Of a stretch of DNA of 64,000 nt, positions 10,698 through 64,000 are shown one piece after another (the stretch's first letter is position 1; each line of letters begins with the position of its first letter). The position numbers and the translations under genes are program-made. The DNA is from Lepidodermella squamata (Eukaryota > Animalia > Gastrotricha), in assembly GCA_047495785.1 (NCBI GenBank), contig JBLDXI010000019.1, forward strand, positions 496,001-560,000. The letters run 5' to 3'. The notes beneath the pieces are model-generated. The model was not told the DNA's origin and searched no databases. It worked only from the letters and a program-made list of their open reading frames with translations.

Positions 10698-13600
10698 ATG
10701 GAAACATTTATCGGAGCATTGCTGTGTTACATTGTTGCCACGCGAATAGCCGAGTGCCGTTAGTTCCGGAATCAATCGTGATTTCATATTTTTAGCAAAT
10801 TGTGCTTAGGTATCATTGCATACTGGTCGTTAACTTCGACGACTCGGTTTCAGGATGTGAGCGGAAACAACTATCATGGCAAGCTTTGCCCTCAGAGCAA
10901 GGCGCAGCTAGGTATAGGCCCATGGAATTCATTTCAAGGCTCCTACAAAATTGGCCAGGACAATATGAGCTGCATTCTGCTGCCAAATGTCAACATCAAG
11001 ATGAACGAATCTTGGACTATAATAGCTCTAGTCAAGTTTGAATCGGGCAGTGGCCCTTTGTTTGACTTCGCAGTTTCCCCTCTGGGTTCAGAACCTTTCG
11101 GAGCAAGTCTTTTCCTAACCTCAACTGATGGAAAAGAAGTGTTCAACAGCAATTTGATGTTAAACGGGGATAAGACGCACTTTGCTGAGAATGCTGCAAA
11201 TTTTTCGAACAGATGGTTCATCATGGCGGCAACTTTTGATGCGCAAAACTCGAAATTCAAAACCTATCTAGCCTTAAAGCCAGTTAATGAAATTTCAACA
11301 GCAGGTTACACGTTCAGTGAGCCTAAAAATGGCATTATGATAGGGGCGAGATGGAATTGGTCGGCATTTGCTGGCTCTGTTGCCTGTTTAGCTGTTTTCG
11401 ATTCCAGTTTATCGATTGATCAAATCGTGGTTTACTTTCAGACTTGCAAAATGACTCCTAAAAACAGAGCACTCGAAGCAATTATACCATTTCGAGAGAG
11501 TACCCCGAATCCTCAATGGATCAAAGAGCTATCTCTACCCTATGCTGCTAGTGGTAAGTTTTTATTTGTTCTGAAAAGCATTTGTTATACAAATCAAACT
11601 TTTAACAGTTGTAAATCCGAATTTGCAATGGTTTCTTACGGGATCGGCCGCAGCTTACCAAGTAACAGTCATCCTTGTCGATAAGCCAGGTCAAAAAGGC
11701 GGGGTTTGGTCTTCGGCTGTAAGGAATTCAATTTACAAATATCGCAGTTCTATAGATTCAACAAATGTTTAAGGGCTTGAACTTTCCAAACATCCGCTTT
11801 GAAGTCATGATACGTCTTCAGAATAATACAAATTGCATAGATGAGGATATTTTCGGGATTTGGCTCGTCGATAAATACAAAACTGCAACTTCTGATGGTA
11901 GGTACGTTATAATGTTGGAAACTTGAGTTACTGAGATATTTTACAGGCAGCCAAACATTTGGAATCATTGCAACAAATTTTATCGGTCTTGGGGTTATTT
12001 TCGATCCAAGATCGGGATCAGCTTACGTCATTTACAACAGGGTGGCTAATTCTAAAATAACTGACGCTACTTACTACCGCGATCAGCCGATCAAACTTGC
12101 TGAAGTCACTGGGGTCAACGGCCTAACGTCAAGTGTCCAATACATAGTCGTCGAAGTAGTCGAGGAGATTCTGCGAGTATGGCAGCAAATAGATGGGTAC
12201 AATGCAACCGTTTTACTTGACAAAATCAGGCTCCCAGGGTTTAAAACACTTGCCGATGACTTGAGGCTAGGTGTATCAGCTGTGGCTACTGGTCCTTCGC
12301 CTTGCTCGGTTGGTGTTCTCAGTATGGAAACATACTCAATCCCATTAAAAAGTCGGCTTTGGACGTTTATACCTGAACTATATTTTGACGGCCAAGCTTC
12401 CGGTGAAAACTCCATTTTCCAAGTTTTTTCTATAGTAACTTCGTATAATTGCAGGCAATTGGAGTACGGCAGCGAAGTCTTTAACTAACCTAGCCGCCGC
12501 CATAACAACCTCAACTAATTTCTCCCTAATAAATGGTTACACTTTACTTCCTCAACATGCTATCGGAAGTCAAGCTGCAATCTACTCAATACAAGTAAAA
12601 GTCCATGAGTTCAGGCTACAGATGAACACTTTGTTATTTTGAAGACACTGCCGACGGATGGATCCGATGTTATGGCGATGATTTGCGTTTACGTTGAGAA
12701 CAAACCGGGTAGCGATGGTCTTACTTTGTTTTTTGATCCCGCCTCCAGCTTGGAACCGACGATCGATGGTAAACTAGTGAGAAGAATAATCCTATTTTTT
12801 TATAAAAATTATCACAGCTGGCCCTGGGTTCCTATCAAGGCTTTTTAAGGGCTTTGCGATAATTTTGACTGGCACATCCTCCAAAGTCTCCATTAGGGTT
12901 ATTTACGAGGATTTAGCTGCCGCAGATGCCATGGCGTCTAATATTACGCTGTCAAACATCGATGGTCAGAACTTAACCAATCTAGCATTCGGAAATTCTT
13001 GTTTCGAGGTGACAGTAGCCAGCGATGAAGCGAGTGTGAGTATTCAGTACCCGAGTGATGGTGATAATATTCCAGTAATTCTATCCAGGTTGTCCTATAC
13101 AGTGAAAACGGTGCCGTTACTCAGTTAGCCAGTGGTGTTTGGGTTCCGAAATTCAGCTCTGTTGGCCCGTGGGTTGTGGGAGTTGGGAGCCACAGCACTA
13201 ACGTTGGCCATGAAGCCAAAGTCTACTCAATAAAGGTTTACAAAGCACCGCAAATCATTCCGCCAAGTAGCGTCAACGCCAGCTTCACCACAGATCCGAC
13301 GTTTTCTTTTCCCGATTTCGGTTTCGGTGAGTTGAATGAACTGCGGTAGCTTTTGTTCGTAGCAATTTTTCGTAGACAATTGGAGAGTTGATCAATTTCT
13401 GTCATCTGCATCTCAAATGTTCCCGTCATCTTCTGAAATTGGGAGCAAGGGTTACGTTCTAACTGATACGACTCCGAACAAAAAGACTCGACTTATATCC
13501 AAAAACGTAAAACCTTTCATAATTAAAACAAGTGCATTGAAGAATCATTACAGCCTTATTACCCTACGTCGGGCGGCTTTCGACTGCGAGTTACGATCAA

Positions 13601-14793
13601 CATGGATATAAATGCCACCGGAGATGGATTTGTAATTTTCATGATTCCGGAGGAAGATATCGGCGCTGCTACTAGCGATTATATTCTGCCGGCTGATTTC
13701 AGAGGACTGGCCATCATTGCTTGTCCTGTCGATACTTCATCAGTCCGAATGTCTTTCAACCTAAAACAGACTAAATTGGGAGCGCTGTCTCAGACCCCTA
13801 TTTTCAGGAAGACCCATCTACCCATATATGGTTTCACTATATACGAATTCACCCTGTTGAATGACGTTATTGGCGTGAGTTATTTCTCAGGAGACTGAAC
13901 AAGAAACACTTTTTGAAACAGGCTAAACTGATTACTTCGAATGGCACTTCAATTGACATTGGCCCAGGATATGCTCTTACCGGCTTTAGTTCGTCTGGGC
14001 CTTGGTTAGTCGGCGTATCTGCCAGTAATAAGATGATGGCAGCTGCCCAAGTTCGACTTTATTCTATCCGGTTATCTAAGGGAATAGATAAAGTCACTCC
14101 CACTACGACCAGCCAAGAAGGTAACTTTACGCCAACGACAGTTGCTGCGGTGATCGATTACCCAATGTACTACCAACTAAGTAATTAAGATGAATGATGA
14201 TAGCTAATTATTCTGAAAATTTGTGTGAGTAGGAGTGACCGGATTGATTGAAGTGATTGGAAATATGACTCTGCCAGATGGCACTGTGCTCCCTTGCGAT
14301 CCATGGCCGAGTGAGCTTGATAATCCCGAATCCCAGCTTTTCAAGCGAGTAGCATTTGTGTTTACTGAACAGGTACTTTAAACCTTTTCTACTTCACACT
14401 CTCGAAATTTTTTTTATGCAGATCAAGCTAATCTATTTGGACCTGAAGTTTGCTGATGTTCAAGTGACTATTACTCGAATTTTCAAAGGCAGCATAATTT
14501 CGGACTACATCGTCGCACTCCGAAGCTTGACGCAATTAACGGAGGACGAGATTCGAATTAAGGTCGATGAAGCTGTTAAGAGACTCGCTAGCGTCATATC
14601 CAAAAGCATAACACGCATCATCAAAACGAATATCACCAATGTTAGAACTGTTTCCGAGCCTGTGCAAACGAGAGATACTGGCTCCCCGAAAACTGCTAAG
14701 ATGCCCAAAAGTTCAGGCAACGGCATTACTGCATATTTACCTATAATCCAGTTTTGTTTTCTGATTTGGACGAATTTGATTAGATACGCGTAG
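10698..14793 (+). CDS. Array paralogue A: LamG-like + 3 L-type-lectin-like domains + SEA + probable GPI signal (multi-exon)
   Basis: ATG 10698 starts a signal exon (METFIGALLCYIVATRIAEC). LamG-like 'IIAYWSLT...DVSGNNYHG'. Lectin-like repeats with 'GGVWS', 'SDGLTLFF', 'GDGFVIF', 'FRGLAII', 'GVSA'. SEA 'ITRIFKGSIISDY'. Hydrophobic C-terminus. Confidence 0.75.
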
Positions 14794-15590: not shown

Positions 15591-18500
15591 ATGAAGTTTG
15601 AATTCACAATTCTTTTGCTCCCGTTTATCAATCACCTGACATGCTTAGTCTCGGGCCGTGAGTTTGCCAAATAATTTTCAACCGTAATTGATTCCGGGAA
15701 TTTGTAGGCTTGGTAGCATTTTGGCCTTTTACAAGTGTAACGCAAAACACGGGGGTGCACTACGACGTCAGCGGGAACAGCTTTCACGCTCAAGGCTGTA
15801 GTGGTAGCAACTTATGGATTGATACACAGGGTAACGTGAGAGTTGGCGCTAATAACAGAAGCTGCATGGTTCTTCCTCGAAACAACTTCGCTGTCAACGA
15901 ATCATGGACCATTCTCGGCTATGTTTACTACGACTCCAATTTTACGGGTCCTTTCATCGAATTCATGGTTTCATCTCAAGGCAAAAGTCCGTACGGTGCG
16001 AGTGTCTTTTTAACTCCTGGAAACACCCTGAGAAGCAGTCTTAAGTTCAACAACCTGAACAATTTTTCGGCAGAAGACCCTGCGCCGAGTTTCAGCAAAA
16101 CATGGAGTTTGATTGTAGCTTCTTATGATGCAACAAATTCGATGTTTAGAACCTATGTAAATTCGATCTTGGTAAATTCCATATCGACTGCAGGATATTC
16201 TTTCTCTGAGCCGAAATTCGGCATCGCTGTCGGAGTTAGATCCGGAACTAGCATTGCTTTCAATGCAGCAATTAACTGTTTCGGTATTTTCAGCTCGGCC
16301 TTTTCAATCACGGAGATTGAAACTTGCATGCAAATTTGCCGTCTTATTCCAAGATCGAAAGGGCTAGCATCAATCGCTTTAGCGCCTAACTCAAGAAGTG
16401 CTAGTTGGTTGTGGGGTCTGTCCTTGCCAGTTGCTGCACTCTGTAAGAATGCTTTGAAAAGTAGTGTTTCCTAAATCGAGATATATTTTAATCCAAATTA
16501 ATCCAGTGGGGAACGCAGTTGGTACAAAGTGGATTATGACTGGAGCTGCCGAGGCATTAGAAACCTCTGTTGTTTTGATCGAAGAACCTAATGAGTTTGG
16601 TGGCCTGTGGTCTACTGCGGTAAGTAATTCAGAATTTCTGTACCGCGCTGATACAATTTTGAACCACATCAGCCGATTCCATCTGCTAATTTGCGCGTGG
16701 AGTTCATGTTTCGCTTCGAAAACGCGGGTTGTGCTGGCGACAATCTATTCGGCATATTCCTTGTTGACAAATTCTATACAGCCCGAACAGGATGTGAGCT
16801 TTTGAGATTTTGAATGTAACCACTAACCACCCAATTTTCATCAATCTAAAGCATCAAGTTTTTTCGAAATCGAGGCATCGTCGTTTCTTGGGCTTGGAGT
16901 GATCTTTGATGTGAAAGCTGCTGCAGCATACGTTATCAACGCAAGGGTTATAAATTCAAAGGTTTCTGATGCCAAGTTCTATCGCGATCAGCCAATCAAA
17001 TTGAAGGAGTACCCTGGGGTTAAAGGTTTAACCTCTGGAGTTCATATCATAGTGGTGGAGATAGTTTGGAGCTCTCTAACTGTTACGCACCTTATCGGAG
17101 ATGGACCGCCGATAACTCTATTTTCGGGCATTGGGTTACCTAACTTTAGCCTTCTTCTGAGTGATCTCCAACTAGGCGTGTCGGCATTTGCGAACGGGCC
17201 TTCGCCATGCTCAGTCGAAGTGCTCAGCATGGAGGCATACTCAATAAGCATGAGTGGACAAGTTTGGGCGCCCGTTTCTTCGCTGGCCTTTAGTCAGGAG
17301 AATTTAGGTAAGTTTTCAACTGATTGCTTTCTCTTCTTATTTTTTCATATCAGGAAATTGGGTCGCCGCATCCAAGCCCATTGATAACACCGGGATTGCA
17401 GCTATCAAGCCGATCGATATTTCGAAAAATGGTTACACATTGCTGAGCCGTAACGATGCTGGTATTCAATCAGTCCTCTATTCGAACAATGTAAATTCTC
17501 TATAATTATTCGTACATCTTATGAGAATCTGTTACAGACACTGAATGATGGGGATGACTTAATCGCATCGTTCTGCGCATACATTGAAAGCGGAATGGGC
17601 GACGACAATATACTAACTATATTTTTTGTACCAGCTAAAACTTTCACGCCTAATGGCAAAGGTTTGTTTCCAGTTACGAATTTATTTGAATTGATGACAC
17701 CGTTGATTCCATATGCAGCTGGACCGGGATATCTACCACAGCCTTTCGCCGGATTAGCAATTATATTGCGTGGGTCATCTAATAATACATCCATCAGAGT
17801 AGTTTATGACGACGTTGGCTTGGCATCGGATGGGATGCGGCCTGAACTTGCGATGTACTTTGTTGAAGGTCTAAATCTCAAGGCTGTTTTCGGTAACGTC
17901 TGCTTTCAAATGAGAATCACACTTATCGACTTGAGTGTAAACAATTTATGATGCTTATCTGGGTGCGATTTTGAATTCTCTGTTAAATAGGTGAATGTGT
18001 ACAATGAGTCAGGAGATGTCACGAAACTCGCGCAGGGGCCTTGGATTTCAAAATTCCTTAAATCTGGGCCATGGAGGCTAGGCATTGGCGCACAAAGCAA
18101 AACATCTGGGCGTGAAGTCAGGGTGCACTCAATCAGAACTTATGAATCAGATTTCGACAATACCGAAACTCAGAAAAACATACTAGCAGAGCAATCTTCT
18201 CCTTTCGGAAAAGGACTCAGTATGCTTTCATTTTCCTGTTTTCAAGTGGCTATTTTAATGTCATTGCCTCTCTCAGGTGATTGGCGAGTGGATGAATCAT
18301 TATCAGGAGCCCAGCCGATGCAAATTTTTCCTCCGTCAACTGCTATTGGGAACAGGGGCTACCTTTTACTTGACAGCACGCTAAACAAGAAAGCTCGTAT
18401 TTATACGAACAAGGTTACCCTTTCGCAATTATTTTCGATTCTAAATTTTCAATTTCACTGATAGGCTTATTATCCAACTTCGGGAGATTTAACTTTTCGA

Positions 18501-20925
18501 GTCAGACTCAACTTCGAGGTGAAGTCATCTGGTGACGGCTTTGTCATCTTCATGTGTCCGGAGGAGGACTTCGGAAACCCAACTGGTGCTTATCTGTTGC
18601 CAGCCGATTTTCGCGGACTGGCTGTTATTGTGGATCCTAGTGGAACCGTACGAGTGGCTTACAGCGTAACAACAAGGACAGGGGATGTATTAAGCATTAA
18701 GCCTTCGTTTACTTTGAGAAACCAAGAAATATTTGGCTTCACAACGTATCAGATATCGATTACCAAAAGTAGCACAAAAGTAATGCCCCGTCGAGTTCTT
18801 GAATAAACATGAATATATATCAAATTATCTAGGTTTCACTGGGGTCTCCGAGTGGTAAATCGTTAGAGTTGGTTTCTAAGTGGACTATGCCAGCTTTCGG
18901 CGTTGCTGGTCCTTGGCTGCTAGGTGTTGCAGCTAGTAATTCGCTGGCTGGGTCGTCTCAAGTTCGGATACATTCACTGGCATACTGGACCTCAAACACG
19001 ATGACTAATCCAGATATCATCAATGAAACTGGCATGGCTTGCTAAAATTCTACTTTCAAATATCGAACCTTTATTTTTTACACAGAATCGTATCAACCTC
19101 GATATTCGTTTGATAGCTTCAATTTAGGTGAGACTTGAACATGCAAAATGAATCGCTTCTCAATTTGTTTATCCTTAGGAGAGAATTGGATAGTTCGAAG
19201 CAAAGGAACTACGAACGCTGACTTTGACTCGTCACCGCCTTATCTCGAAACCAACCGCAATATTCCCTGCATGATGCTCTTGCCTAATGTGATAGGTCGC
19301 CAAGTGGTTATGTACGCAAGAATGGTTAGGCATTTAGATATTTCAGCATCGAATATATTGATGTCTGCTTCTAGCCATTTGTAATGAGCGGAACCTCTGG
19401 TTACCTCATAAAAGCGAGTTTATCGGTTATTAGCAACGGTGGCGGCGATGGCGTAGATCTTTTTTTAGCTAACGCTGAAAGTTTGAATTCGAAAAATTGG
19501 ACTTGTAAGCATTGTTATCCCTTCCTATCTCTATTTTGGTTATTTTAATTATCAAGTCACAAACGCCGAATTTTACCTGCAATTCCCTACACGTGGTTTG
19601 CATTACGTGCTGAATACTCGGCAGACAAATTCGTTAAAGCTGGTCTACAGCACCTACCCTATAAACTCAATTTTAAAAGAAAGCGCCTTCTCACCACAAG
19701 TCCTGAGCTTGACAAACGATCAGCTTTATAACTCGTCGTTTTCAAATATCGCCTTCAGTCTATACATCGAAAATGACTACGTCTCTGTAAGTCTATTCAC
19801 GTATTAGATGATTTACCGACATTACTAGCTTTTCAATCTGCAAGGCGAACTTCACTGACATGAAAGGCAACGTTTATCAATTAGCGGACAAGATTGTAGC
19901 ACCTTGCCTATCTGCAACAGGCCCGTGGTATCTCGGTATCGCGGCGCGTTCCACTGACAAGACCATCGACGTTTGCGTGAATTCTATTAAAACATATGTC
20001 AACAACGTCACGAGCCCTTATGTTTCGCCGACATGTACGACGACTTCAACTTCAACAAGTTCAAAATCGACAACCTCAACATCGACAACTTCAACAGCCG
20101 AAGTTTCAACAACTACTACGCCCGGAATCTCATCCAAGTCACAAGAATCCTCTTCGACTACGCCTTATATTCCTGAAGCATCGTCTGACTCGCCGTCTAC
20201 TTTAAGGGCGAAAGCGCGTTTGGATTCTACGACTTCATTATTATCGACAGAAACGGATGGGTATTACTCACCATACTATAATATGGGCAAGTCACTTTCC
20301 GGTGAAATACAGCTTTTTCCAACTATGATCTTCAATTTCAGAGGTCAGCGGGAGTCTTGAAACTATTGGAAATATGACCCTTCCCGATCTTACTGTTTTA
20401 CCTGCGGAACCTTGGCCAAAAGAGCTTGATAACTCCAGTCATCCGCTCTTCAAAAGCGTCGCGGCTGTTTTTGCCCGAGAGGTATCAGGTCATGTTCCAT
20501 AAGCTTCTCTTTTATGCCTGTTTATCTTTTTCCAGGTCAACTTGACGTATTTTGAGGCCGGAGCGATAGTTGATAACGTTACAATCACACGAATCTACAA
20601 TGGCAGCGTAATAGCCGACTACATCGTTGTGCTTCGCAGCCTTACGCAGTTAAGCGAGGAGGAAATCCAGGCCAAAGTTAAGATAGCCATACAACGATTG
20701 GCCGAAGCTGCTGTCAAAAGAATCGGGGAGATAATCAAAGCGAATGTTGAAGGCGTTACAGTCCTTTCGAAGCCGCAATATATTAGGACAGCAGCACCAC
20801 TGTCGTATAGCCAACCGACTCGACCGATTATACCTTACGTTAAATCCAGCAATGATTGTTCATCGCTAAACGTCGGAATAATGCAGCTGCTAATCTCTAT
20901 GAATGCTCTAGCGTTCATCTTGTGA
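15591..20925 (+). CDS. Array paralogue B: LamG-like + 4 L-type-lectin-like + Thr/Ser stalk + SEA + probable GPI signal
   Basis: Signal exon MKFEFTILLLPFINHLTCLVSG. Exons collinear with A plus a fourth lectin-like repeat (~19180-20000). SEA 'IYNGSVIADY'. C-terminus 'IMQLLISMNALAFIL'. Confidence 0.78.
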
Positions 20926-37355: not shown

Positions 37356-37569
37356 ATAACCGGTTACCACTACTTCTTTGTACACTGAATTATAACATGT
37401 TTGATGTATGTCTCTATATTATAATAATATAATAAACTTGCGAGTGATGCAAACAAATCCCTGGTTCACTAATTGCTCTGGTTGGAATTTACATCTAGGC
37501 AGACCGCTGATTTGATGGATTGACAGCAAGAGTGTCCTCATCATCCAGAATTATTCTTTTAAATGGTGA

Positions 37570-37700
37570 TCATAGGACACTAGATAGCAATAAAAGAACT
37601 AGCTGCCGCCTGTGCAGGGAAAATCGGTTCGATTGCCTCGGCGAAAGTGTAAGGCTTTCCGATCAATTCAAGATCCCCGGTTACAACGCCGGATCCAACA
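37570..37700 (+). pseudogene. Degenerate remnant of the SEA-domain terminal exon
   Basis: ctagctgccgcc...aaaatcgg...gcgaaagtgtaaggc...gccggatccaa aligns to 58870-58970 and has an in-frame stop. No upstream exons. Confidence 0.6.
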
Positions 37701-38362
37701 TGAAGATCAAGGCAGTGATCAAGGCCAACGAGCAACCATTATACGAAAATGGTAGCGCAAAATTAACACAAATACGGTAGTGCTACGGCAGGACTACGGC
37801 GAGTACTATTTCAGTGCTACGGCGAGCTTGACATGTTCCAGGGTATGCAACTAACAGCTGGTATCCCCGGGAACTCACTGACAACGTGAGTCGGGAAAGG
37901 AAAGCTCCGGAAACCGTCAAATCAGGCTCTGATTTTCTGGCCTGAAATCAGCCAATAGCCGGTTTGACATCGCAGGTAACGACTACAAGGGGGCATTGGT
38001 CAGTAGTCAGTAGGGACGTTGGTCAGTCCCTATTCATCATACCCGGCTCCGCCTTGTTACTGTAGACCTCCTGGTAGTATGTGAATACATTATTTGATGG
38101 TTTGACATGAACTAACACGTGTTCTACAAAGAGACTCTACAGGTGATCAGGTGATTGGTTAATGCGAGTCTATAATTGGTGCTATGCTATTTTGTTTAAT
38201 TTCAAAAATTTCAAGTCAGGGCGAATTTTTAAAAATGCTTCGGCGCCGAAATGACTGGCCGTACCGGCACCGTAGCAGTGCCGTAGTTTGCGGTGGTAGT
38301 AGTAACGGTGCGAGGGCTATAAAGTTCGACATTCGCGGATTTCCACTCCACTGCTGCTAATA

Positions 38363-50400: not shown

Positions 50401-52983
50401 TGAATGCGACTGGGGATGGTTTCGCTATCTTCGTAATCCCTGAAGAAGACGTGAACAGCAAAACTGGGGCATATCTACTCCCGGCAGATTTTCGAGGCTT
50501 CGCACTCATAGTCAGTCCAATAAATAATACCGTCACTGTGGTTACGAATGTGCTGCCTACGAAAACAAGCGTGATCGACTTGAAGCCATTCTTGAGAAAA
50601 TCGTGGCAACCCATATATGGGTTTACCACTTACGAAGTTAGGGTGGGATCGGACTCCTTATTCGTAAGTCTTTTTCTTTTTATGATTATTCCAACATCTA
50701 ATGACACCCCTGTAAAAGTGTAAATTGCGAGCATCAAATGGCGATGTTAGTAACTTTGGCCAAATATCGTACGGTATACTCGCTGTCGGTGGACCTTGGG
50801 TCGTTGGTGTTGTGGCAACCAATAGCGAAAGTGGCGTCTCTCGAATTCAAGCGAATTCATTGAAAGTTTCTACAGGTGGAGATTCGCAGAACCCTGATTC
50901 GTCTCCTGAGCAAGGTAAATCGATCTTTTGAATCGTGTTCTTGTTGTAATTGTTCACAATTCATTTTGGTCTTCGTAAAATTTTACGCATTAAAATGTCA
51001 TTACAGGCATTTATCAACCCCAGTTCTCCTTCGATGGTTACAATTTGGGTAGAATTGTGTTCCTTCCTGGCGCAACCGTTCTGATTGTTTTTTATTTCAG
51101 GCGAAAATTGGATAGTTCGAACAAAAGACAGCGATAACCTAAACTTGGCATCTAACTTTGCGAACCTTCAGACAATGAACGTAGCTATGCTAAAGCTGCA
51201 CCCCTACTCTAAACCACGTCAAGCGATTATGTACACGAGAAAGGTCCGCTAATTTAGCCATGTAATTATCATTTGTATCCAGATTTTTTAGCCCTTGGCT
51301 CTGAATACAACATCTGGCTATGTTATAAACATCAACGTATACGTAGTAAGTTCTGGCGGTGAGGGATTCGATATTTTCCTGGCCAACCCAGAGAGCATAA
51401 ATGCTTCTAATTGGCAGTGTAAGTTTCTTTGCAATTTATTCTGATTGCTTTCTAAAGAACATGTTGCCTTCCAGATAGCAATGCTGAGTACTACCTGCAA
51501 TTCCCCGTTCGAGGGCTACATTTCATCGTCAACACACGGCAAAAAAATGCTGTCAAAATGGTTTACAGCTACTCACCGATGACATCCCTAATCAATGGAC
51601 CGCAGTTCTCCAACGAAACTTTATACTTGAACAACAGCCAATTATGGTTTACCAACGGATCATATATCTATTCGAACGTTACCGTTCGCCTCACTGTGGA
51701 GAGTGACTACGTTTCGGTAAGGCATCCTATATACAATTTAATCCCTCATTCAGCACTTGGGTAAATAGGCCTCTCTTCGCGATATGCAAGATAACGTGTA
51801 CAAAATCTCCGAGAAGCAACTAGCTCCTTGGCTGTCGATTGCAGGGCCGTGGTATCTGGGAATCGGAACTAAAGCATCCAACTACGTCCTCGACTTCGGC
51901 GTTATTTCCATTCGAACATACTCGCTGCTTAAACCAATGACAGTGACCACATCAACAACCTCGACCACGACTACAAGCACGTCCCCACCTTCCACAACAT
52001 CGATAACAACCACAAGCACGTCATCTTCATCTACGACGTTGACCACAACTACAAGCACATCCTCTCCTTCGACCAGAATTTCAAGTACGTTTCCGACTTC
52101 AAGCAATTCGATAACTTCCTCGAATAGCACCCGGCCTTCGACAAAATCAGCGAAAACAGCTAAACGAATAGTCGAACCAAGTTATTACCACATAAGTGAG
52201 TTTGTTAATAAAGATTTTTTGAAATATATGTCAAGACATTTTCATGCAGGTGTCAGTGGTATGATTGAGGTTGAGGGTAACATGACGCTGCCGGATGGAA
52301 CAGTTCTTCCGTGTGAACCTTGGCCTGAAGAGCTCGACAACTCCAGTTCATACCTGTACAAGAGCGTTGCATCTGTGATGGCTAACGAGGTATCGATCTG
52401 AAAACTATAACTTCTTCATCTTGGTTGGTTTTCCCCACAGATTGTGTTGACCTATTTGCAGTCGGGCGCAGCTAATGTGTCTGTGAACATCACTCGAATC
52501 TTCAGAGGGAGTATCATCGCTGATTACATTGTTGTACTTCGGAGCCTTACTCAATTAAGCGAAGAGGAGATCAGTGCTAGGGTAGAAATAGCGATAAAGG
52601 CACTAGCCGCCGCTGCTGCTGCTAGGATTGGTCAGATTGTCTCAGCGAAAGTGCGTGGTATTCAGATCATTTCAAGACCCCCGACCACCACCCCAGATCA
52701 GATCGAGTTCACTTACGATCAAGGCAGTGATGCAGGATCTGGATTGACGCAGGAACCGGACAGCTCTCCTAATAAACAAGTAACAGGTTTAAGATTACCA
52801 AACATCTCCGGCTTCACTAACAATCATGGACTGGGTATAACGCTGGGCCGCATTGGTGGATTTCCAAGCACTTTGAAGACTCCAAGCGCTTTTGGCCGAT
52901 CCGCTGCATCCCAAATTAGAATGGACATTATTTTCAAGTTTCTGAATTTCTTTATTCTTTTCTATTTTGATTTTCAAGCATAA
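47457..52983 (+). CDS. Array paralogue E (closest to C)
   Basis: Signal exon MRTRLTLIVLLALGSQYTSALG. Collinear with C but has no retroelement. SEA 'IFRGSIIADY'. Confidence 0.78.
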
Positions 52984-53159
52984 ATAACCTGTTATTACCA
53001 CTTCTTTGTACGCTGTACGCTGAATTATAACATTGTTGTCTCTACGTTGTAAAAATAAACTTGCGAGTGATGTACAGAAATCACCGTTTCCCCAATGGAT
53101 AGGTTTTTATGGATTGAAAACAGTGTACTCATCATCCAGATATATTTATGTCAACTGAT

Positions 53160-53285
53160 GCTCATAGGACTTTAGATAGCGATGGAGGCACTAGTCGCCG
53201 CCGCTGCAGCGAGAATCGGTCCGATAGTCTCAGCGAAAGTGCGAGGCGTTCAAATCAATCGCAACCACCGCCTACCACGCAACTA
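53160..53285 (+). pseudogene. Second degenerate SEA-exon remnant
   Basis: ggcactagtcgccgccgctgcagcgagaatcggt...tctcagcgaaagtgcgaggcgttcaaatc closely matches 58865-58940. Confidence 0.65.
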
Positions 53286-53577
53286 CCTATGATTTCTCCA
53301 CAGAAGTTTTCCAGATCGATGTTTTTCGTCAAATTTATATGTAACGATCTCATGAAGTAAGTATGATATTCGCTGCAAACAGTTGTCGCTGTGCGCTGCG
53401 TTAAAACCAAATATCGCAAAACGCCCACGTCGTTAGATTTTGTTAAGCCTGCTGAGGGGAATTCTCTACTAGGAATTGCAAGGTTTGTAAATCGTTACCT
53501 TGTCTGTTTATTTTTAATCAAAATATTCAGTCGAACTGTTTTCGTCCAATATGGATAATTGCTGAGAAAATGCTAGG

Positions 53578-56500
53578 ATGAGAACCAAATCGGCCTTGAT
53601 CGCTGTTCTCACGCTAACAGCTGTTTTCTCAAAAGCGTCTGGCCGTAAGTTCAAAAGAATTTGAGTCACTTTGCTTGTATACTGAGTCAACGACTGCAGG
53701 AGTGATTGGTTATTGGCCGCTTACATCAAACATGCAGTCTTATGCCAACTTGTTGGATGTTAGTGGGAATGACAATACGGGCAGAATGTGCCCCACCGGC
53801 AACGTGTCAGTAGATCCGATAGGTCCATGGAACTTCGCCTCAGCATCATTGAAAGTTGGATTTGACGCTAACAGCTGCATCTATTTGCCGAAAACAAACA
53901 TGTCTCTAAGCCAATCTTGGACGATCATGGGCTACGTCTATGTCCAATCTGGCAGCGGTCCTTTTATCGATTTCGCTTTATCAAACTCTCTTGGGCAACA
54001 ACCCTTCGGGCCTAACATATTTCTATCTGTTGCACCTGGTGGCGACTCAGTTCGAACCGATTTGATGCAACCAAATCTGAATGCGCAAAGAGCCGCAACT
54101 TTGGCCAATAAGTGGGTAATGATTACCGCAACGTTTGATGCGCCTTCTTCTACATTCAATACCTACTTGGACACGACTCTTCTCACTTCTATTCCGACTG
54201 CTGGTTACTCGTTTCCTACGCCGAAGATTGGCTACGTGGTTGGGACGCGTTGGAACTCGACTGGTTTCCTCGGATCGGTTACGTGCTTTGCAATGTTCAA
54301 TTCGAGTTTTACGACCTCTCAAATCGACCTGTTTCAATATATCTGCCGTTCGGCACCGAAAGCTAGAGGAAATGAATTGTTACCAGTCGCATCGTTTTAT
54401 GACCCGAAATGGAATAGGGAGTTGTCTCTTCCGATAGCAGGAGGCGGTAATAAGACAAAGCTGAAAGCTGATTGCTTTAAAAGTTTCTACTTTTTAGTAT
54501 TGAATCCTGCTTTCACTCAGTGGTATTTAACTGGAGCGGCTGAAGTACAAGAGCTCTCCATTGCCTTGGTCAAACAGCCTAACCAGTTTGGTGGCATTTG
54601 GTCTTCTGCGGTAAGAAAAATCGAGTTTCTATAAGAATGCCCAGGACCGAATTAGATTTATGGAGATTTTTCTCGCAATTAGCCACACTTAACCCAAGTG
54701 TTTGAAAAATTCGACTGCTGTCAACGGTTTTCTTCCCTTTCTTTCCATAAGTCTTCGCCTAATGATGATTTCCAATTTTTACTAGTCAATCACTGCTTGG
54801 CACTATCGCGTAGAGGTAATGGTCTCTTTGCAAGGCACTGGTAATCTCTTCGGTATATTCATGATCGACAAGTACAAAACCGCTCGCCAGGGATGTGAGT
54901 GTTTCATCCTTAATCCGTAACACAGCTCGAAAATATGAAGTCATCTATCCCATTTAGCATCGAAGTACTTCGAAGTGGAGTCGTCGTCATTCATAGGACT
55001 CGGCGTGATCTTCGATTCCAGCAACAAAGTCGCTTACGTTATTTACAACAGAGTTGTCAATCCGCGAGTGATAGATGCGAAATACTATCGTGATCAGCCT
55101 ATAAACATAGCTGAGAAAACAGCAGTTGTAGGCCTCACATCCGGCAGACAAACAATAGCACTTGACATTGTTAGAGATTCTTTAACCGTATACCAACTAA
55201 TTGACGGAGGTTCAGCAACAACTCTTTTCAGCAATGTCAATCTACCGGGGATTTATACCCTCATACCCGATCTAATATTAGGTGTTTCGGCTATTTCGAA
55301 TGGTCCTTCGCCTTGTGCTGTCGAGATGCTGAGTTTGCAGACCTATAACATCAGAGTAAATGAAGGATACAGAGTTCTTAATCCGCCTTTGTCGCTCATG
55401 GATTACTCCAACACAGGTTTAGCATTAATTGATTGTTTGATTGATCGAAAGTTTTCCTTTCAGCGAATTGGACTGCCCAGAAGAAATCAATTGACAACAG
55501 CGGTCAGGCTACCTCGATGCCCGTCGACTTTTCAACGATAAGCGGTTTCCAGCTACCATCTGGCGTTGGGGAACAGTCGGTATTGTATTCCATTCAGGTC
55601 AGTATTAATCCCTAATTATAAGATGAGGTATGTGTCTTCCATCCCAACGATCCCAACAGAGTTTGCCAGTGGACACTGTCGATATCACAGCTGTATTTTG
55701 CGTCTACATGGAGAATAGACCCTTGGGTGATGGCCTGACAATATTTTTTGTTCCGCCCGGTAGCTTCGATCCAAATGTGAAATGTAGGTCATTTCCTAAC
55801 TAGCGTGGTTAAGAGATCTAATAGTTTATGTCAAAAGCTGGTCCTGGATTTCTGCCTCAGCCTTTCAAAGGATTTGCTGTCGTAATAAATGGACCGAATT
55901 CTTTTCTTCGTATTGTTTACGAAGATGCCGGGGCGGCTGACTTCATGAAATCAGAAATGATACTTCAGCACATGGACAGAACAGATCCCTCGATAGCGTT
56001 TGGCAATGTATGCTACGAGATTATAATCAATAGCAACGAAGCTTTTGTAAGATGATAACTAGCAGGCAATGAGTAGTCTTGATATTTGAGGATAATTAGG
56101 TTGGCGTATACAATGAGTCTGGTAATTATACCGCTCTAGCGAAGAACGTCTGGGTTCCAAAATTCAAAGATCTTGCCCCGTGGGTTGTGGGCATTGGAAC
56201 GCAAAATACTGTTATTGGCCACGAAGTTCGCGTCCACTCCATCAAGCTGTTCACGGTTGGAACAGCAGATGCTAGGAACGCAGTGCAGGCATCGCTGGCC
56301 ATTGATTTGGCCTATCCTTTAACATATGCTGGGTTCGGTATGCTCATATTTTCTATAAAATATGCTTCAATCACCGCTTTCTAGATGCTTGGAGAGTCGA
56401 TGAGTCGTTGTTAGGCTCTCAGCCAGTTCGGATCTTCCCACCTCCGACTGCAATTACTAACCGGGGTTACACGCTTCTTGATAGGACTCCTAATAGAAAA

Positions 56501-59103
56501 GTTCGCATTCTATCAACGAAGGTAGGCGCTATTGGCTCCCTGAAGATTGCTAATAATTTGTTCGTGGAATAGCCCTACTATCCGTCTTCTGGAGGATTAA
56601 ATATAGTGTTCAGGCTGAATTTGGAGCTGAACTCCACTGGGGACGGTTTCGTGATTTTCATTATTCCAGAGGAGGACGTTGACAGCAAAGCTGGTGCATT
56701 TCTACTCCCTGCAGATTTTCGAGGAATGGCTCTCATTGTCAGTCCTATGAATAATTCTGTAACCCCAGTTACGAATGTGCTCAGGAGCAAACAGGCCGTA
56801 AACGAAATAAAGCCAGTTAGCAAAGTTGGGCAGCCTATATATGGATTCACCAGTTACGAGTTGCGGCTAAGTGGGGAATACGTATATGTGTGTTTCTGCA
56901 ATGCATGCTATAACTGTTTGAAAGATGTTATTAAATCTTTGCAGTTCAAGCTAAGAGCTGCCAGCGGGGACTTAATCGACTATGGCACAGTAATTTATGC
57001 TGGACTTGCAGTCAATGGACCTTGGATTCTTGGCGTTGCCGCCAGCAACAGCGAAAAGGGTGCTAGTCGAATCCAAATTCATTCTCTGAAATTTACTCCG
57101 GGAGGGGATGTGCAAAACCCTGATTCGTCTCCCGAGCAAGGTAAATTGAAATGCTAAATGATTGTTTAATCTTCTTTACTGTCTATGTTTACAGGAGTCT
57201 ATCAGTCTCAATACTCGTTTGACGGATATAATTTGGGTATGTTATTGCATGAATTCATTTCTATACTGAGTTTTGTGTATAAGGCGAAAATTGGGTGATT
57301 CGAACCAAAAGCGATGCCAATTTAGACTTGGGAAGCAACGTGGCAAACCTGCAAACAAGAAATCTGGTCGCGCTTAGATTGCATCCCAACTCAAACAAGC
57401 GACAGACGGTCATGTACACCAGAAAAGTAAGTTATATAAACTTTTGAAAGTGCGATAGCCTTTACTGGAATCAAATTCCAGCCTTTAGCCCTGAGCACAA
57501 CATCTGGATACGTCATAACCCTTAATCTCGGGGTAATTAGTGGCGGCGGTGACGGATTCGATATTTTCCTAGCTAATGCAGAGAGTCTAAACGTGTCGAA
57601 TTGGCAGTGTAAGTTTCTTTTGCAACTCATCCTGAATGATTCTAACAAATGTTGGCGATCAGATAGCAATGCTGAGTTCTTCTTGCAATTCCCAGTTCGA
57701 GGATTGCATTTTCTCGTTAACACCCGGCAAAACAACGCTATGAAAATGGTTTACAGCTACTTACCGATGAAATCTCTAATCAATGGACCGCAGTTCTCTA
57801 ACGACACTGTTTATCTGAATAATAGTCAATTATGGTTTCCTAATGGAACGAATTCTTACTCGAACATTACTGTTCGCCTAACTGTGGAGAGTGACTACGT
57901 CTCGGTAAGACCCATAGAGTAATTAGTAATTAGGGAAGTGGGTTTATGAATTTATTATTGGAAAAGGCTTCTTTTCGAGATCAAAATTCCAACGTGTATA
58001 AAATTGCTGAGAAACAAATGGCCCCTTGGCTGTCGATTGCGGGGCCGTGGCATCTCGGAATTGGAACGAAAGCATCCACCTACAACTTCGACTTCTACGT
58101 CTATTCTATTCGTACTTACTCGCTACTCAAGCCAATGACAGTAACCACATCAACAACATCGACCACGACTACAAGCACGTCGCCACCTCCTACAACATCG
58201 ACAACAGTCGCAACCCCGCGTCCTTCTTCTACATCACCTACCACAATCAAAAGTATGCCCCTTTCTTCCAATACGTGGACTAAGACTACTTTGCCTTTGC
58301 CTACTTTTATAGCATCGACCACAGTCGACAGCAAGTCACACTCTTCAGCAAGCACTTCAACTGCTTCACCACCTTCGAAGGCCTTCTCCAGCATTTCCCA
58401 GCCAGCGACAAGTTCGGCGACAACAACCAAGAGATTTGTTGAGCCAAGCTATTACAAGATCGGTGAATTTAAATAAGGATAATTATTCGGAAATATTTAA
58501 AAAAAAATTACTCAGGTGTCACTGGTATGATTGAGGTTGAGGGTAACATGACGCTGCCGGACGGAACAGTTTTGCCGTGTGAGCCTTGGCCTGAAGAGCT
58601 CGACAACTCAAGTTCATTCTTGTACCAGAGCGTAGCAGCTGTTATGGCTAAGGAGGTATCGATCTGACAGCTATAATTTCTGCATCTTTATTGGCTTTTT
58701 TGAACAGATTGTGCTAACATATTTGGAGTCAGGCGCAGCTAATGTGTCAGTGAACATCACTCGAATTTACAAGGGCAGTGTCATTGCTGACTACATTGTT
58801 GTACTTCGGAGCCTTACGCAATTAAGCGAAGAGGAAATCAGTGCTAGGGTTGAGATAGCCATAAAGGCACTAGCCGCCGCCGCTGCTGCCAGAATCGGTC
58901 AGATTGTCTCAGCGAAAGTGCGAGGCGTTCAAATCATTTCGAGACCACCAACTACCACGCCGGATCCAATGGAGCATACTCCAGGCACTGGACCGAAAAT
59001 AACGCTTAGAACTCCAATGGGCCGATCCCCTGCAACCAGTATTAGAATGGACATCATTTTCAAGTTCCTCGATTTTTTAATCTTTTTCTATTGTGCATTT
59101 TAA
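53578..59103 (+). CDS. Array paralogue F (C/E-like, more diverged)
   Basis: Signal exon MRTKSALIAVLTLTAVFSKASG. LamG-like domain, four lectin-like repeats, Thr/Ser stalk, SEA 'IYKGSVIADY', hydrophobic C-terminus. Confidence 0.78.
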
Positions 59104-59519
59104 TTGAATAATCCGTTTCTTCTTGGTACGCTGAACTATTCCTGTCTTCTTATTGTAATGTAATAAACCAGCTATTGATGAAAAGTAATCACTAGATTTC
59201 CCATTGACTCTGACTGGTTGGAATCTACTTCCGGACAGGCCCTAGAACATTAAATGAAACGAAAAATTATATTTTGGTAATTTTGTGCTGAACAGATTTT
59301 TTGTCTTCACTTGTGTGTGCCATGGAAAAAAAATTTCAATTATTGAGCAAATAATGAAGGAGTTCCAATTAAACGGCAACCACCATTCTCTAAATCAAAT
59401 GTTTCCCAGGTTCAGTTCCACTTGATTGTCAATACTGCCAGCTCCTTTTGTCTGATTGAAAGTAAACTTGCTAGCCTACATTAGAAATTATACATTAAAA
59501 TAAGCATGAAATAAAATAA

Positions 59520-62500
59520 ATGTTTTACGTAATCTTGCTGATCACGTCTAGCCTTGCTGTTACCAATAGCCGTGAGACTAATTTCCCCTAGTTTAACCTT
59601 CGAAAAGCGGCTGTATTTCAGGACTATTAGGCTATTGGCCGCTAACTAGCTTAACCGGTTTAGATGATATGAGTGGCGAGGGAAATCACGGCGAATTATG
59701 CACTTCGAGCTTGGCATCAGTTGATGCAGAAATGACCGGCCCGTATGGCGAAAAATCTTCGTCATTTCAAGTGGGCCAAACAAATTACAGCTGCATTACA
59801 TTTCCATCGCTGGACTTGTCGAACTTGAATGAATCGTGGAGTGTCTTCGGATTTGTTAACTTGAAGTCAGGGCAAGGGCCGTTCTTTCAATTTCAACCCG
59901 GCGGTCAGTTGCCGCCTGGTCCGAATTCTTATTATAGTGATTTAGAGGGCGGCACTCTCATTATAAACCCAATGTTCGAAGGTCAAAGTGATGTTTCTGG
60001 TAAGGGGCAATGTGGGCCTATCAATCAGTGGCGATTAATCCAAGTTAGCTATGATAATGCGATGTCGAATCTTATTAGCTACTGTAACGGTCTACAAGCT
60101 GCTCAGATTGACACACTTGGACGGCGAATAGGGATGAGTTCTTACGGCATGACGATAGGAGCAAGGTAATCAGGTTGATTCATTCGAACGTGGGTAAAAC
60201 TTTGATTTTCCGAAAGATGGGGCTACGACAGCTTTGTTGGAAATGTTGCTTGTTACGCCGTTTTCAATGAAAATGTTACTCCGGATTCGGCGAGCACTTT
60301 TAAATCGATTTGCAAGCACAGTGAGTTCACATATTATTGGCTTGAATCATGGCTGATACTTTATATGTTTCCGAATCCAGGCCCAAAGAATGGAATCTAT
60401 TCCGCAATACCTCTATCGCCCAGAGCTACCCAGCCAACTTATAATAGCGATATGTCCCTTTCTATCGGTTTATTAGGTTTGGAATTTTATCCACCTGCCA
60501 CATTTTGCTACAATTTTAATTACAGTTGCCGCTAATAAAACTTCATGGACGACGAGTGGATCTGCCGGAGTTGAGCGCGGGTCGATAATTGCTCGGCTCG
60601 TCAAGGATGAAATCAGCTATCAGAACGGTGGAATATGGTGCTCTGCGGTAAATTTGGATATTCAGTTAATTGCATAACGATGTCAACATTTCGTGGCTTA
60701 GAACATCACATCACCCAACTTACGAATTGAAGTTCAGCTTAAAATTGGCATTTCAACAGGGAAAGGTAGCTATTTCGCGATTATGCTCGTCGACCGATAT
60801 AGAACAGCTAAAAGTGAGACATTGCTTGAAATAATTTCCGGTTTTATAATTTTCTTCCATAAGGCGCTACAAATCTTGGAGTAAAACGGGATTCTTTCGT
60901 TGGTCTAGCCTTCGTGTTTTCTCCTGAGAAAAAATCTGCTTTTATCCTATATGCCCGAGTCGCGTACGATAGCCTCGATGATGGAGCTTTCTTCCGAAAT
61001 CAGCCGATCAAATTAGCAGAGAATCCATTGAATGACCTGAAAAATGGCAGTCACTTGATAGTCCTTGAAATTCTAGATAATGAATTGACAGTCTGGCTAG
61101 AAATCGAGGGATCGGCGCCGCAGAAAGTCTTCGACAAAATCAATCTAAATGGCTTTGATTCGATGATTTATGACCTACAACTAGCCATCACAGCTACAGC
61201 TACAACTGGATCCTACGGAAGTGTTGAAGTTATGACTATCAACTCGTTTAATCTCACGTCGATTACAGGTAATAAAGACTGATTTCCGCTCTGCTTCAAA
61301 AATCAATAATGTTTGATTGCAGGTAAAGTTTGGCAGCCCATAAATGGCATGACCTTCGCTGGAGGTGATGGAAGTGAGTTCAGAAAATCTAAAATTCAAA
61401 TTTCTCATAATATCGCATGATTGAATTATTTCCAGCCTTTTACAATACTGCTGCTAAAAGGGCTTCTGACGCTGTTCCGCTCAATCCATCAACTGTGTTT
61501 TCCGAGTCGAAAGGCTACAATTTGCTTCCGTCTAATGCCACCCAGCGCCACGTAGCTTTCTTCACGAAAGACGTAAAAGATAAAACCATCAATTAGCTAA
61601 TTATTTGGTTTCTTTTTCAAGACCTTGCCTCAAGATGGATCGCACATTCGAATTATTTTTACGTTGAACGTAAAACGGGTTGAAATGGGAAACGGTTTCA
61701 CGTTGTTTCTGATGCCAGCTAACACAATTTCATCTGGATTTAATTGTAGGCTATAAATGATCAATTTCTAATAAATTGCCACCTAATTTCTTCTATTCTT
61801 CTATTCAAAGCGACTTTTAGTTTTCTACCCGACCCATTCCGTGGTTTAGCTCTAGTTGCTGGAGGACCTGTTAAGAATCACATGATTCGTCTGATTCACG
61901 GTGACTTAGGTGGATATTGGGCGCCCGATACAGTGCTAGCCCTCGTAAACTTGGAATCTAATGTAGCCGAGCAGCTTTCCTACAACAACACCGCTTTTGA
62001 ATTCATCATTACTGGCGATTACATCTCAGTAAAAAACGAAATTCATAAATGTTTCGTAATTTTTGTAAATCCTTCAGGTGAATGGATACTCGCCTGGTAG
62101 TAGCGCGACTGTTTTAGCGAAAAATGTCCTCGTTCCGAAATTATGGTCGATCCAGCCATTTGTTGTCGGCGTGGGGGCGCATAGCCTTAACACGCCCCAT
62201 GAAGTTAACATCATCTCCATCCGGGTTTTTCAATCACCACCTTCGATAATCGACGTCAATTCCCTGCCACTTGGAATGTCGCAGGTGCCTGAATTCAATT
62301 TCAATGGCTCTAATTTTGGTTTGAATTTAAAATAATCAGTAAATTTTGATTGATCAATTTTACCAACAGAAAACTGGATCGTTCAGTATCGATACAAGAC
62401 TAATAAAACAGCTATAAATCCAAATTTTGTTAAACGAACTACTGGCTATATTTTGCTGCCAAAAGAAAGCGATAGGCAAGTGAGAATGTACAGCAAATTC

Positions 62501-64000
62501 GTAAGAATTAATTCGATTTTTCGCAACATTTTCAATAAATTTTTCTCATCCAATCAGAATCTTACCGCCGGGGGTAGTGAATTGGTCACGCTACGCGTTG
62601 CTGCTAACGTTGAAGCATCTGTGGTTTGTGATAGTTTTGTCGTTTTTCTCTGCCCAGATGAAGATTTCATCAACGGATCTCGTATGATTTCGAATCAAGA
62701 TTTCGTTGCCAAATTTTCTGCTTTTCTTTTAATTCAGCGAACGAATATTATCTCCCACATTCATTTCGCGGTATCGCCGTCGCGGTCAATACGGCCAACT
62801 CTTCGTCGAGGGGAGCGGCTTTCTATCATCAGTACAGATCTTACGTAGGCTCAATCACCACGGGGATCAAGCGAGGTAACATATTGAACGACCGCGTTCA
62901 AGGATATGCTGTTTACGAGATAACTATCACGCCATCAAATGCTTCGGTAACTTAATGAAAGGCTCACGCATCAGGATTCAATTTTAACGCTTTTAAGGCT
63001 TCGATTTTGTTTTCCGATGGCAACAAAATCTACTTCGAGCCAACACCGGCCAACTTCCGAGGCATGTATACAGCCGGGCCGTGGGTTGTTGGAGCTTCAG
63101 CTGGCAACAGTCCAGCCAACAAATGCCAGATTCGGATCTACTCTATTGAAGTCCACCGCTCTCCGCCGGTAGCAAACCCAACAATATCTACTGAAAACGG
63201 TAAATTATGTAAATTACCCCAATAATTGGCTTATATTTTGCGTCAATTCAGCTTTTCTGGGAACTCGCATGCCCGCCTTCACTTATGACGGCTTCAACTT
63301 GGGTATATCCAAAATCGCTCATTTTTTATTTTTAACAAGTGTGGTGATAGATGATTGGTCGGCAAGAGGAAAGGACCCAGATGGAAGAGACAACCAATTC
63401 ACGCAAATGATTCAAACGCAGACGAAAGGCCTTACTCTTGTTACAAAAACCACCGACAGGCAAGCTGCGATCTTCTCTAGAAAGGTAATTTTTCGAAGAA
63501 GTTCAAGAATTTCATTGATTTTTTTTAAATTACTAGCCGCTACCAATGAATCAAACATTCAGTTACAACTTCGTCGTCAATTTGACTCTGACGCAATATT
63601 TCAACCTTGGATCTTTCGATTTTTTCCTCGCGCCGAGTGAATGTCTTAACAAACAAAGCTGGAATTGTTCGTCTTTTCATTATTTCGAAGCAATCGAAAT
63701 GTTTTTACCCCATAAACGCAGACTTGGCGTCCGAGTTTTACGCCCAAGCTCCAATGAAAGGATTCCATTTCATAGTTAACTTGAACAATGACGGGCTTCT
63801 TAAAACTGTCTATAGCTTGGAACCAACACTTGGCAACAATCTGACAATGGAAAACTCATTCGCGCCAGATTTGAACGTCAGCCCGTCGAAATTCACTGGG
63901 GATACATCGTACCGAATCCTGGTTCAGGGTGACTACATTTCAGTAGGGAAGAACTTTGTAAGATTATTTTATTGTAATAATCCTATTCCTAAGATTTACG
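59520..64000 (+). CDS. Array paralogue G (most divergent; truncated by window edge)
   Basis: Signal exon MFYVILLITSSLAVTNS. 'LLGYWPLT...DMSGEGNHGELC', 'NGGIWCSA', 'FFRNQPIKL' and 'AGPWVVGASA' match the family. It has reached the fourth lectin-like repeat at the edge. Confidence 0.7.

Follow-up and report, generated by a model that had tools for sequence, protein, structure and literature searches.

A tandem array of genes for putative surface glycoproteins with an L-type-lectin-like, LamG and SEA-like architecture in Lepidodermella squamata

Introduction

A series of homologous multi-exon genes is found in a stretch of the Lepidodermella squamata genome (contig JBLDXI010000019.1, positions 496,001 to 560,000 of the forward strand). 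This stretch was analyzed over its whole length of 64,000 nt and is referred to as the window hereafter; the series occupies the + strand from position 10698 to the window end. The genes predict proteins with a signal peptide, a laminin G (LamG) domain, several related repeats (R1 to R4), a Ser/Thr-rich stalk, an SEA-like domain and a hydrophobic tail. What kind of proteins are they, are the repeats lectins, and is this architecture known from other organisms? The analysis described below indicates that the series is a real, lineage-restricted gene family, and that its domain combination is new and made of known parts. As for the products, we consider it probable that they are lineage-restricted surface glycoproteins of the secretory pathway, with a ConA-like head, a Ser/Thr-rich stalk, an SEA domain and a tail resembling a glycosylphosphatidylinositol (GPI) signal. 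Such proteins would bind ligands multivalently, and their SEA domain would enable the ectodomain to separate.

Structure of the gene array

Exon models were obtained with a dynamic-programming script that rewards frames with protein similarity across the subfamilies, together with splice-site scores. They were adjusted by eye at the first exon in genes A and G, as well as at a GC-AG intron of B and D. Searches and structure predictions were performed exon by exon, or on natural stop-free stretches that read through in-frame introns.

The G+C content of the window is approximately 43%, and multi-exon genes with GT-AG introns of about 50 bp are densely packed in it. An all-against-all BLASTP comparison of the + strand reading-frame segments revealed seven collinear sets of homologous exons on the same strand, which are designated A to G and have a common exon plan with such introns. 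In its full form, this plan consists of the signal peptide, LamG, R1 (exons a, b and c+d), R2 (a, b, c and d), R3 (a, b+c and d), a 42-nt mini-exon, R4 (a, b, c, and d with the stalk), and two SEA exons with the tail. Each of the seven genes is opened by a short hydrophobic exon starting with ATG, the signal-peptide exon. Three repeats are found in A, which is devoid of R4 and has a very short stalk, four in B to F, and at least four in G, where the window end falls inside R4. The coordinates, the number of genes and the domain order given in the first-pass annotation of this DNA were all reproduced by the exon sets and exon models. The genes, and the parts of the reference gene E, are as follows.

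10698..14793, + strand: gene A; 14 exons, coding sequence 3438 nt (1145 aa); signal peptide, LamG, R1, R2, R3, short Thr-rich stalk, SEA-like domain, hydrophobic tail; introns all GT-AG, 47-55 bp; Laminin_G_3 E 5.7e-8
15591..20925, + strand: gene B; signal peptide, LamG, R1-R4, Ser/Thr stalk, SEA-like domain, tail; Laminin_G_3 E 6.5e-12
22214..37355, + strand: gene C; plan as in E; R1 exon b broken at 23391/23392 by a long terminal repeat (LTR) retroelement (tblastn of E exon peptides)
40646..46484, + strand: gene D; close paralogue of B with the same domain order; R2-R3 intron enlarged
47457..52983, + strand: gene E (reference model); 19 exons, coding sequence 4515 nt (1504 aa)
47580..48323, + strand: gene E, LamG exon (Laminin_G_3, Pfam E 1.6e-9); phase 1 introns on both sides
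48376..49169, + strand: gene E, R1 (exons a, b, c+d), predicted L-type-lectin-like beta-sandwich (AlphaFold2 model of exons b-d of the C paralogue)
49235..50108, + strand: gene E, R2 (exons a, b, c, d) with GDG..IF motif; hhalign to R1
50155..50914, + strand: gene E, R3 (exons a, b+c, d); partial AlphaFold model of the F copy of low confidence
51007..51930, + strand: gene E, 42-nt mini-exon and R4 (exons a, b, c, first part of d)
51931..52195, + strand: gene E, Ser/Thr-rich mucin-like stalk (from the translation)
52250..52983, + strand: gene E, SEA-like domain (2 exons, G/SIIADY motif; Pfam SEA on relatives' proteins), linker and C-terminal hydrophobic tail (candidate GPI signal)
53578..59103, + strand: gene F; plan as in E; mosaic divergence from E
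59520..64000 and beyond the window, + strand: gene G; most divergent copy, ending at the window edge inside R4

The models of A, B, D, E and F are free of stops from ATG to the natural stop codon, with canonical splice sites and conserved phases. The BLASTN comparison gave nucleotide identities of 85% for B and D, approximately 85% for C and E, and 70-74% for F against C and E; A and G are divergent copies, whose R1 is only about 35-50% identical to the R1 of the other paralogues. Gene G carries three extra features: a 51-bp intron in the LamG exon (60166-60216), a 51-nt exon between R1 and R2 (61323-61373), and a retained intron between exons b and c of R3 (62682-62737). The intron following the last R3 exon has a GC-AG donor in B (approximately 19028-19085) and D (approximately 44437-44506), and is of the GT-AG type in C, E and F.

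Relationship among the repeats and their predicted fold

The N-terminal domain of the head could be assigned directly. Exon 2 (about 744 nt) of A to F matches the Pfam family Laminin_G_3 (PF13385) with E values of 5.7e-8 to 6.5e-12 and scores of 33-46 bits, against a gathering cut-off of 27.6. No Laminin_G_3 match was given by the split LamG exon of gene G in the Pfam scan. This family was the only Pfam match among all the exon pieces and read-through pieces of the seven genes.

The repeats were compared through their motifs, profiles and intron phases. The motifs W..TG.A, Q.GG.WS, GDG..IF, F.G.A and G.SA, to which the first-pass annotation had drawn attention, are present in the translations. 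Three features concern the relationship among the repeats. One is that the last exons of R2, R3 and R4 can be aligned with P, G and S invariant and W nearly so, and the middle parts of these repeats have the GDG..[IF]F and F.G.A motifs in common; judged from these alignments, R2, R3 and R4 are plainly homologous to one another. Another is that the profile of the R2-R4 last exons is matched to the R1 profile at the equivalent position (hhalign probability 90%, E 1.5e-6), and the profile of the middle parts is matched to R1 collinearly (E 2.5e-4). In the negative control, the R2-R4 profiles against the LamG exon gave hhalign E values of at least 0.1. The last feature is that the intron phases (1)a(0)b(1)c(0)d(1) are common to all four repeats, with the intron between c and d lost in R1, and that between b and c lost in R3 of A to F and kept in G. 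R1 is the outlier among the repeats, yet it is linked to R2-R4 by the profile comparison and the identical intron phases. The simplest reading of these features is that the repeats arose by serial duplication of a four-exon cassette with flanking phase 1 introns. The possibility that the repeats are further copies of the N-terminal LamG domain was rejected on the basis of the control comparison.

For the prediction of the fold of R1, exons b-d of gene C (window positions 32846-33466) were used. This input covers 84% of the domain, without exon a and with 19 intron-encoded residues, and was accompanied by a 16-row alignment that includes the metagenomic relatives described below. The AlphaFold2 model has a pLDDT (predicted local distance difference test) of 73.8 and a pTM (predicted template modeling score) of 0.75, and its low-confidence parts are exactly the intron-encoded insert and the inter-domain linker. 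When this model was compared with the PDB by Foldseek, the top 30 or so matches were almost exclusively L-type lectins, with E values of 5e-5 to 1e-3 and template modeling (TM) scores of 0.45-0.55. They include VIP36 (2e6v, E 4.8e-5, TM 0.55), ERGIC-53, the Entamoeba legume-lectin-like domain (5zbt), Emp46p and legume lectins; galectins and other ConA-like folds appear only lower, at about E 1e-3. With moderate confidence, R1 is predicted to adopt an L-type-lectin-like beta-sandwich fold. For R2-R4, a lectin-like fold is suggested only through their homology to R1 and the resemblance of the motifs, because the direct model of R3 was too poor to use.

Several observations weigh against a lectin assignment. 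When the exon and read-through pieces of R1-R4 were scanned against Pfam, no lectin family (PF03388, PF00139) came up at E values of up to 10, and the PDB sequence-profile searches with the R1 and R2-R4 profiles did not find a lectin. No similarity between the first exons (a) of R1 and those of R2-R4 was detectable by hhalign. The structural match of R1 itself is moderate (TM 0.5-0.55, root-mean-square deviation 6-7 A) and was obtained with a partial domain. The AlphaFold model of part of R3 from the F copy, whose exon-fragment alignment was poorly placed by MAFFT, has a pLDDT of 51 and gave no significant Foldseek matches. Finally, the Asp of the GDG loop is absent from R1 as judged by eye, and the D.F.N motif of the metal loop is not evident by eye in any repeat. 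The L-type lectin fold suggested for the repeats in the first-pass annotation has moderate support for R1 from the VIP36 and ERGIC-53 matches, and extends to R2-R4 by homology only, with the R3 model having failed and no family hidden Markov model (HMM) having matched.

These observations bear on a distinctly less probable alternative, which keeps the architecture but in which the ConA-like domains would have no lectin nature: the proteins would be a structural or adhesive part of an apical matrix, cuticle or glycocalyx, and would bind proteins or act as a hydrated, mucin-like barrier. Such roles are known for many domains of the LamG, pentraxin and ConA-like kinds. The absence of a lectin HMM match, the lack of the GDG Asp in R1 and of a visible metal-loop motif in any repeat, and the presence of galectins and other ConA-like folds among the R1 matches at about E 1e-3 are all in its favor, as is the uniform purifying selection described below, which is expected of a housekeeping surface component. 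On the other hand, the 30 or so structures that match R1 best are all carbohydrate-binding L-type lectins, and GDG..[IF]F is kept in R2-R4 at the position of the sugar-binding Asp of legume lectins.

Relatives and distribution

The architecture had been regarded in the first-pass annotation as unfamiliar and lineage-specific, and the searches for relatives bear out both points. When 1.84 billion representative proteins were searched exhaustively with the R1 profile by HMMER, three marginal matches were obtained, of which two are true relatives (E about 1e-4 to 1e-3); the third was rejected as a spurious bacterial repeat protein. A search with one relative, P0001, yielded four further relatives, all of which are unnamed open reading frames (ORFs) of metagenome assemblies in the European Nucleotide Archive (ENA). 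In total, there are about six relatives among about 15 billion proteins; they include P0001 and P0003-P0006, and the ENA assemblies concerned include ERZ27332993 and ERZ27333047. The combination was found in no named protein, and the near absence of relatives supports restriction to a lineage. Word searches gave no matches for the LamG exon of F and no relatives of the R2-R4 type for the R2-R4 alignment, and pattern scans of the JGI metagenomes with R3 and SEA patterns found nothing. In the literature searched, no paper combined an L-type lectin and SEA for such a protein.

The contigs of the relatives carry tandem genes with introns of about 50 bp, and the plan of their products is signal peptide, LamG, R1, stalk, SEA and tail. 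The metagenomic relatives are the same as the window family in the LamG exon motif YWP.T..D.SGN, the R1-type domain, the Ser/Thr stalk, the SEA domain, the hydrophobic tail, the tandem arrangement and the short introns, while they differ from it in having no R2-R4 and fewer introns. Because the relatives have this simpler plan, LamG plus R1 looks like the older module, and R2-R4 like a later addition in the lineage of the window.

Two further contigs were noted. In positions 769-4679 of contig k141_1134265 (ENA ERZ27332993), one ORF (1930-3213) consists of R1, a Ser/Thr stalk and a second LamG, and the gene seems to read LamG, R1, stalk, LamG, R1, stalk, SEA and tail; LamG plus R1 seems to behave there as a duplicable module. 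In ENA ERZ23486787 (positions 8169-9760), an SEA-like tail module with 44% identity to its counterpart in P0001 is joined to SRCR domains rather than to LamG and lectin-like ones. The latter contig also carries septin, Tim17 and forkhead genes, which indicates an animal-type organism.

Stalk, SEA-like domain and C-terminal tail

In A to F, the head is followed by a Ser/Thr stalk (short in A), an SEA-like region and a hydrophobic tail, as the first-pass annotation had described. The stalks are Ser/Thr-rich, have lengths between about 20 (A) and about 110 (D) residues, and contain no long tandem repeats. Judged by the long tandem-repeat Pro/Thr/Ser domain of true mucins, they are to be called mucin-like and not mucins.

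The SEA-like motif G-S-[IV]-I-[AS]-D-Y is present in A to F. In SEA domains, the autoproteolysis motif lies in the turn between strands 2 and 3. The identification of the region comes from the relatives and from a profile comparison. In the relatives, the SEA region lies in one ORF; P0001 reaches 26.6 bits with Pfam SEA (cut-off 26.4), and a precomputed PF01390 annotation exists for P0004 and P0006; the SEA exons of the window are 36-40% identical to the SEA of the relatives. Moreover, the joint SEA profile of the window and the relatives (A9) matches the SEA region of ADGRF1 in the PDB (E 1.3e-3), with the G-S-I-I/V of the family aligned with the G-S-I-V-A-G-Y of ADGRF1. On the opposite side, the SEA pieces of the window, where the region is split by an intron, gave no match to Pfam SEA (PF01390) even at E 10. 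Thus, the earlier assignment of an SEA domain with a G/S[VI][VI] motif holds as to the motif in A to F, and the SEA identity of the window region is supported indirectly, by way of the metagenomic relatives and the ADGRF1 profile match, with no Pfam match of the window's own pieces.

The C-termini of A to F, as inspected by eye, consist of 14-17 hydrophobic residues after spacers rich in S, G, N, A and C, with no cytoplasmic tail. A hydrophobic C-terminus after small residues was also found in the metagenomic relatives. The tail is plausibly a GPI-attachment signal and is treated here as a candidate one.

Selection and evolution of the array

The ratio of nonsynonymous to synonymous substitution rates (dN/dS) was calculated by the Nei-Gojobori method, summed exon by exon, for four pairs of genes: it was 0.24 for B/D, 0.18 for C/E, 0.19 for E/F and 0.19 for C/F. 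Across these pairs, the values per domain were 0.06-0.31. Since dN/dS is far below 1, the copies are constrained, working genes. Broad diversifying selection across the copies is unlikely, and a few sites may be under such selection.

This result touches the proposal that the proteins are immune, symbiont-recognition or allorecognition receptors diversifying by tandem duplication, roles that the first-pass annotation had suggested. The array is indeed tandem, lineage-restricted and expanded, the head is multivalent and lectin-like, and the paralogues diverge strongly, as in the R1 of A and G. Nevertheless, purifying selection acts in every domain of the four pairs, the gene ends are homogenized by what appears to be gene conversion (see below), and the proteins have no immune signaling domains. 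We regard the proposal as weakened and improbable.

The divergence between E and F is mosaic, with a dS of 0.34-0.51 and a nucleotide identity of about 84% in the LamG exon and the SEA region, and a dS of 1.3-1.8 and an identity of about 69% in R1-R4; the E segments compared with F for the high-identity ends are 47573-48499 and 52130-52707. This mosaic dS suggests gene conversion at the gene ends of E and F. B-C and D-E, moreover, look like the two copies of a duplicated pair of genes. Short relics similar to part of the SEA exon are located at 37511-37777 and 53118-53357, just downstream of C and E, respectively; their presence downstream of both genes is in keeping with an origin of C and E by duplication of a single unit.

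Retroelement in gene C

Gene C is interrupted by a retroelement, which does not appear in the first-pass account of this gene. Its components are as follows.

23392..32347, - strand: Ty3/gypsy-type LTR retroelement of about 8.96 kb, inserted antisense in exon R1b of gene C (Pfam, repeats, BLASTN)
23392-23585 and 32154-32347: LTRs, 2 mismatches/200 (99% identical)
30617-32230, - strand: gag-like ORF, open, 537 aa, with a CCHC knuckle
25947-30494, - strand: pol ORF, open, 1515 aa, with reverse transcriptase, RNase H and integrase
23739-25865, - strand: env-like ORF, open, 708 aa, with a signal peptide and a C-terminal hydrophobic segment

The env-like ORF has no Pfam or PDB match. The element looks young and intact. 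It is flanked by a host duplication of 590 bp on the + strand, in which the left copy (22802-23391) and the right copy (32346-32935) are 100% identical, and which spans part of the LamG exon, exon R1a and the start of R1b. This duplication is far larger than a normal target-site duplication; it could have originated from recombination between two insertions, or could be an assembly artefact. The exons of gene C downstream of the element are all intact from 32685 on, and the duplication covers exons; therefore, an intact copy of every gene C exon is present on one side or the other. Splicing across the retroelement could, judging from this arrangement, give a normal gene C mRNA.

The broken gene C, the odd, perfect flanking duplication, which could be a misassembly, and the small relic SEA-exon fragments downstream of C and E are what might be cited for the array being decaying pseudogenes or an assembly artefact. 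This explanation is largely refuted and is assigned very little probability: five of the seven genes (A, B, D, E and F) have the stop-free models described above, dN/dS is far below 1, and the copies differ by 15-30% or more, which is not expected of collapsed or duplicated reads.

Neighboring genes

Upstream of the array, a gene for a secreted protein is located at 5643-10112 on the + strand. It has three Sushi domains (7465-8300), a Gly/Thr/Ser-rich mucin-like region with raised G+C content, and an unrecognized domain of about 120 aa that occurs twice (5643-6277 and 6893-7414). The other features upstream of the array are as follows.

78-1450, - strand: exons with a signal peptide and a weak ANF_receptor match (E 0.003), possibly of a class C receptor
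1857-3032, + strand: single-exon GNAT acetyltransferase ORF, 391 aa, with no entry in the protein collection

The three upstream genes speak for an animal as the source, and the genome is probably a small one of the invertebrate type. The Rfam scan of the window found nothing.

Discussion

The favored reading can be stated as a series of steps. The head would be made only of ConA-like beta-sandwiches, namely one Laminin_G_3 domain followed by three to four divergent L-type lectin folds (legume, ERGIC-53 or VIP36-like). It would be carried on an O-glycosylatable Ser/Thr stalk and then on a membrane-proximal SEA domain with the autoproteolysis motif G/S[IV]I, and the hydrophobic tail without a cytoplasmic part would serve as a GPI-attachment signal. 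The proteins would then stand on the outer leaflet as a mucin-like coat, where the head may bind extracellular ligands multivalently, most likely glycans, and the SEA domain may let the ectodomain separate under force or be shed. The repeats probably come from the duplicated four-exon phase 1 cassette, and the array from tandem duplication, including that of a two-gene unit, with gene conversion at the gene ends. Beyond the architecture itself, glycan binding, shedding and the GPI anchor are what we infer from the sequences.

The family can be compared with two groups of known proteins. The first is the animal and fungal L-type lectins (ERGIC-53/LMAN1, VIP36/LMAN2 and Emp46p/Emp47p), which are, with the legume lectins, the best structural matches of the R1 model. 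Like legume lectins, the window repeats carry the W..G.A, GDG..IF, F.G.A.. and G.SA motifs. Known L-type lectins have one lectin domain each, are recognized by Pfam, and are type I membrane cargo receptors of the endoplasmic reticulum (ER) and Golgi. In contrast, the window family has three to four tandem, divergent copies that are not recognized by HMMs, placed behind LamG and on a module of stalk, SEA domain and candidate GPI signal. From this module, a cell-surface location is presumed, unlike the ER/Golgi location of L-type lectins. The second group is the membrane-tethered mucins and other surface proteins with SEA domains (MUC1, MUC13, MUC16, enteropeptidase and ADGRF1/GPR110), which likewise have a Ser/Thr-rich stalk followed by a membrane-proximal SEA domain with a motif of the G/S[VI][VI] type; of the sequences in the PDB, it is the SEA region of ADGRF1 that the SEA profile of the family matches best. 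These proteins are transmembrane, whereas the window family ends in a bare hydrophobic tail typical of a GPI signal; moreover, its stalk is short (20-110 residues) as compared with a long tandem-repeat mucin domain, and its head is lectin-like. The L-type lectin fold is likewise exposed on the surface for ligand binding in the plant L-type lectin receptor kinases and in Lactococcus YwfG, but the partner or anchor domains there are unrelated (a kinase and a cell-wall anchor, respectively), and no sequence relationship of these proteins to the window family was detected.

A more specific version of the favored reading, which we hold as a tentative possibility, is that this is the first described animal family of cell-surface multivalent L-type lectins, in which ERGIC-53/VIP36-type domains have been added to an older LamG-plus-lectin module on a self-cleaving SEA stalk with a GPI anchor. 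If this is true, a fold of intracellular cargo receptors would have been recruited into a sheddable glycan-binding coat in a poorly sampled lineage.

The finding is neither a new mechanism nor a new fold. Its building blocks, from LamG and the L-type lectin fold to the mucin stalk, the SEA domain and the candidate GPI signal, are all known. Should the repeats bind sugars, animal L-type lectins would not be confined to single-domain ER/Golgi cargo receptors. In addition, the family would illustrate cleanly how a multivalent receptor can be built by exon-cassette duplication, and it marks a lineage with an essentially unsampled surface proteome.

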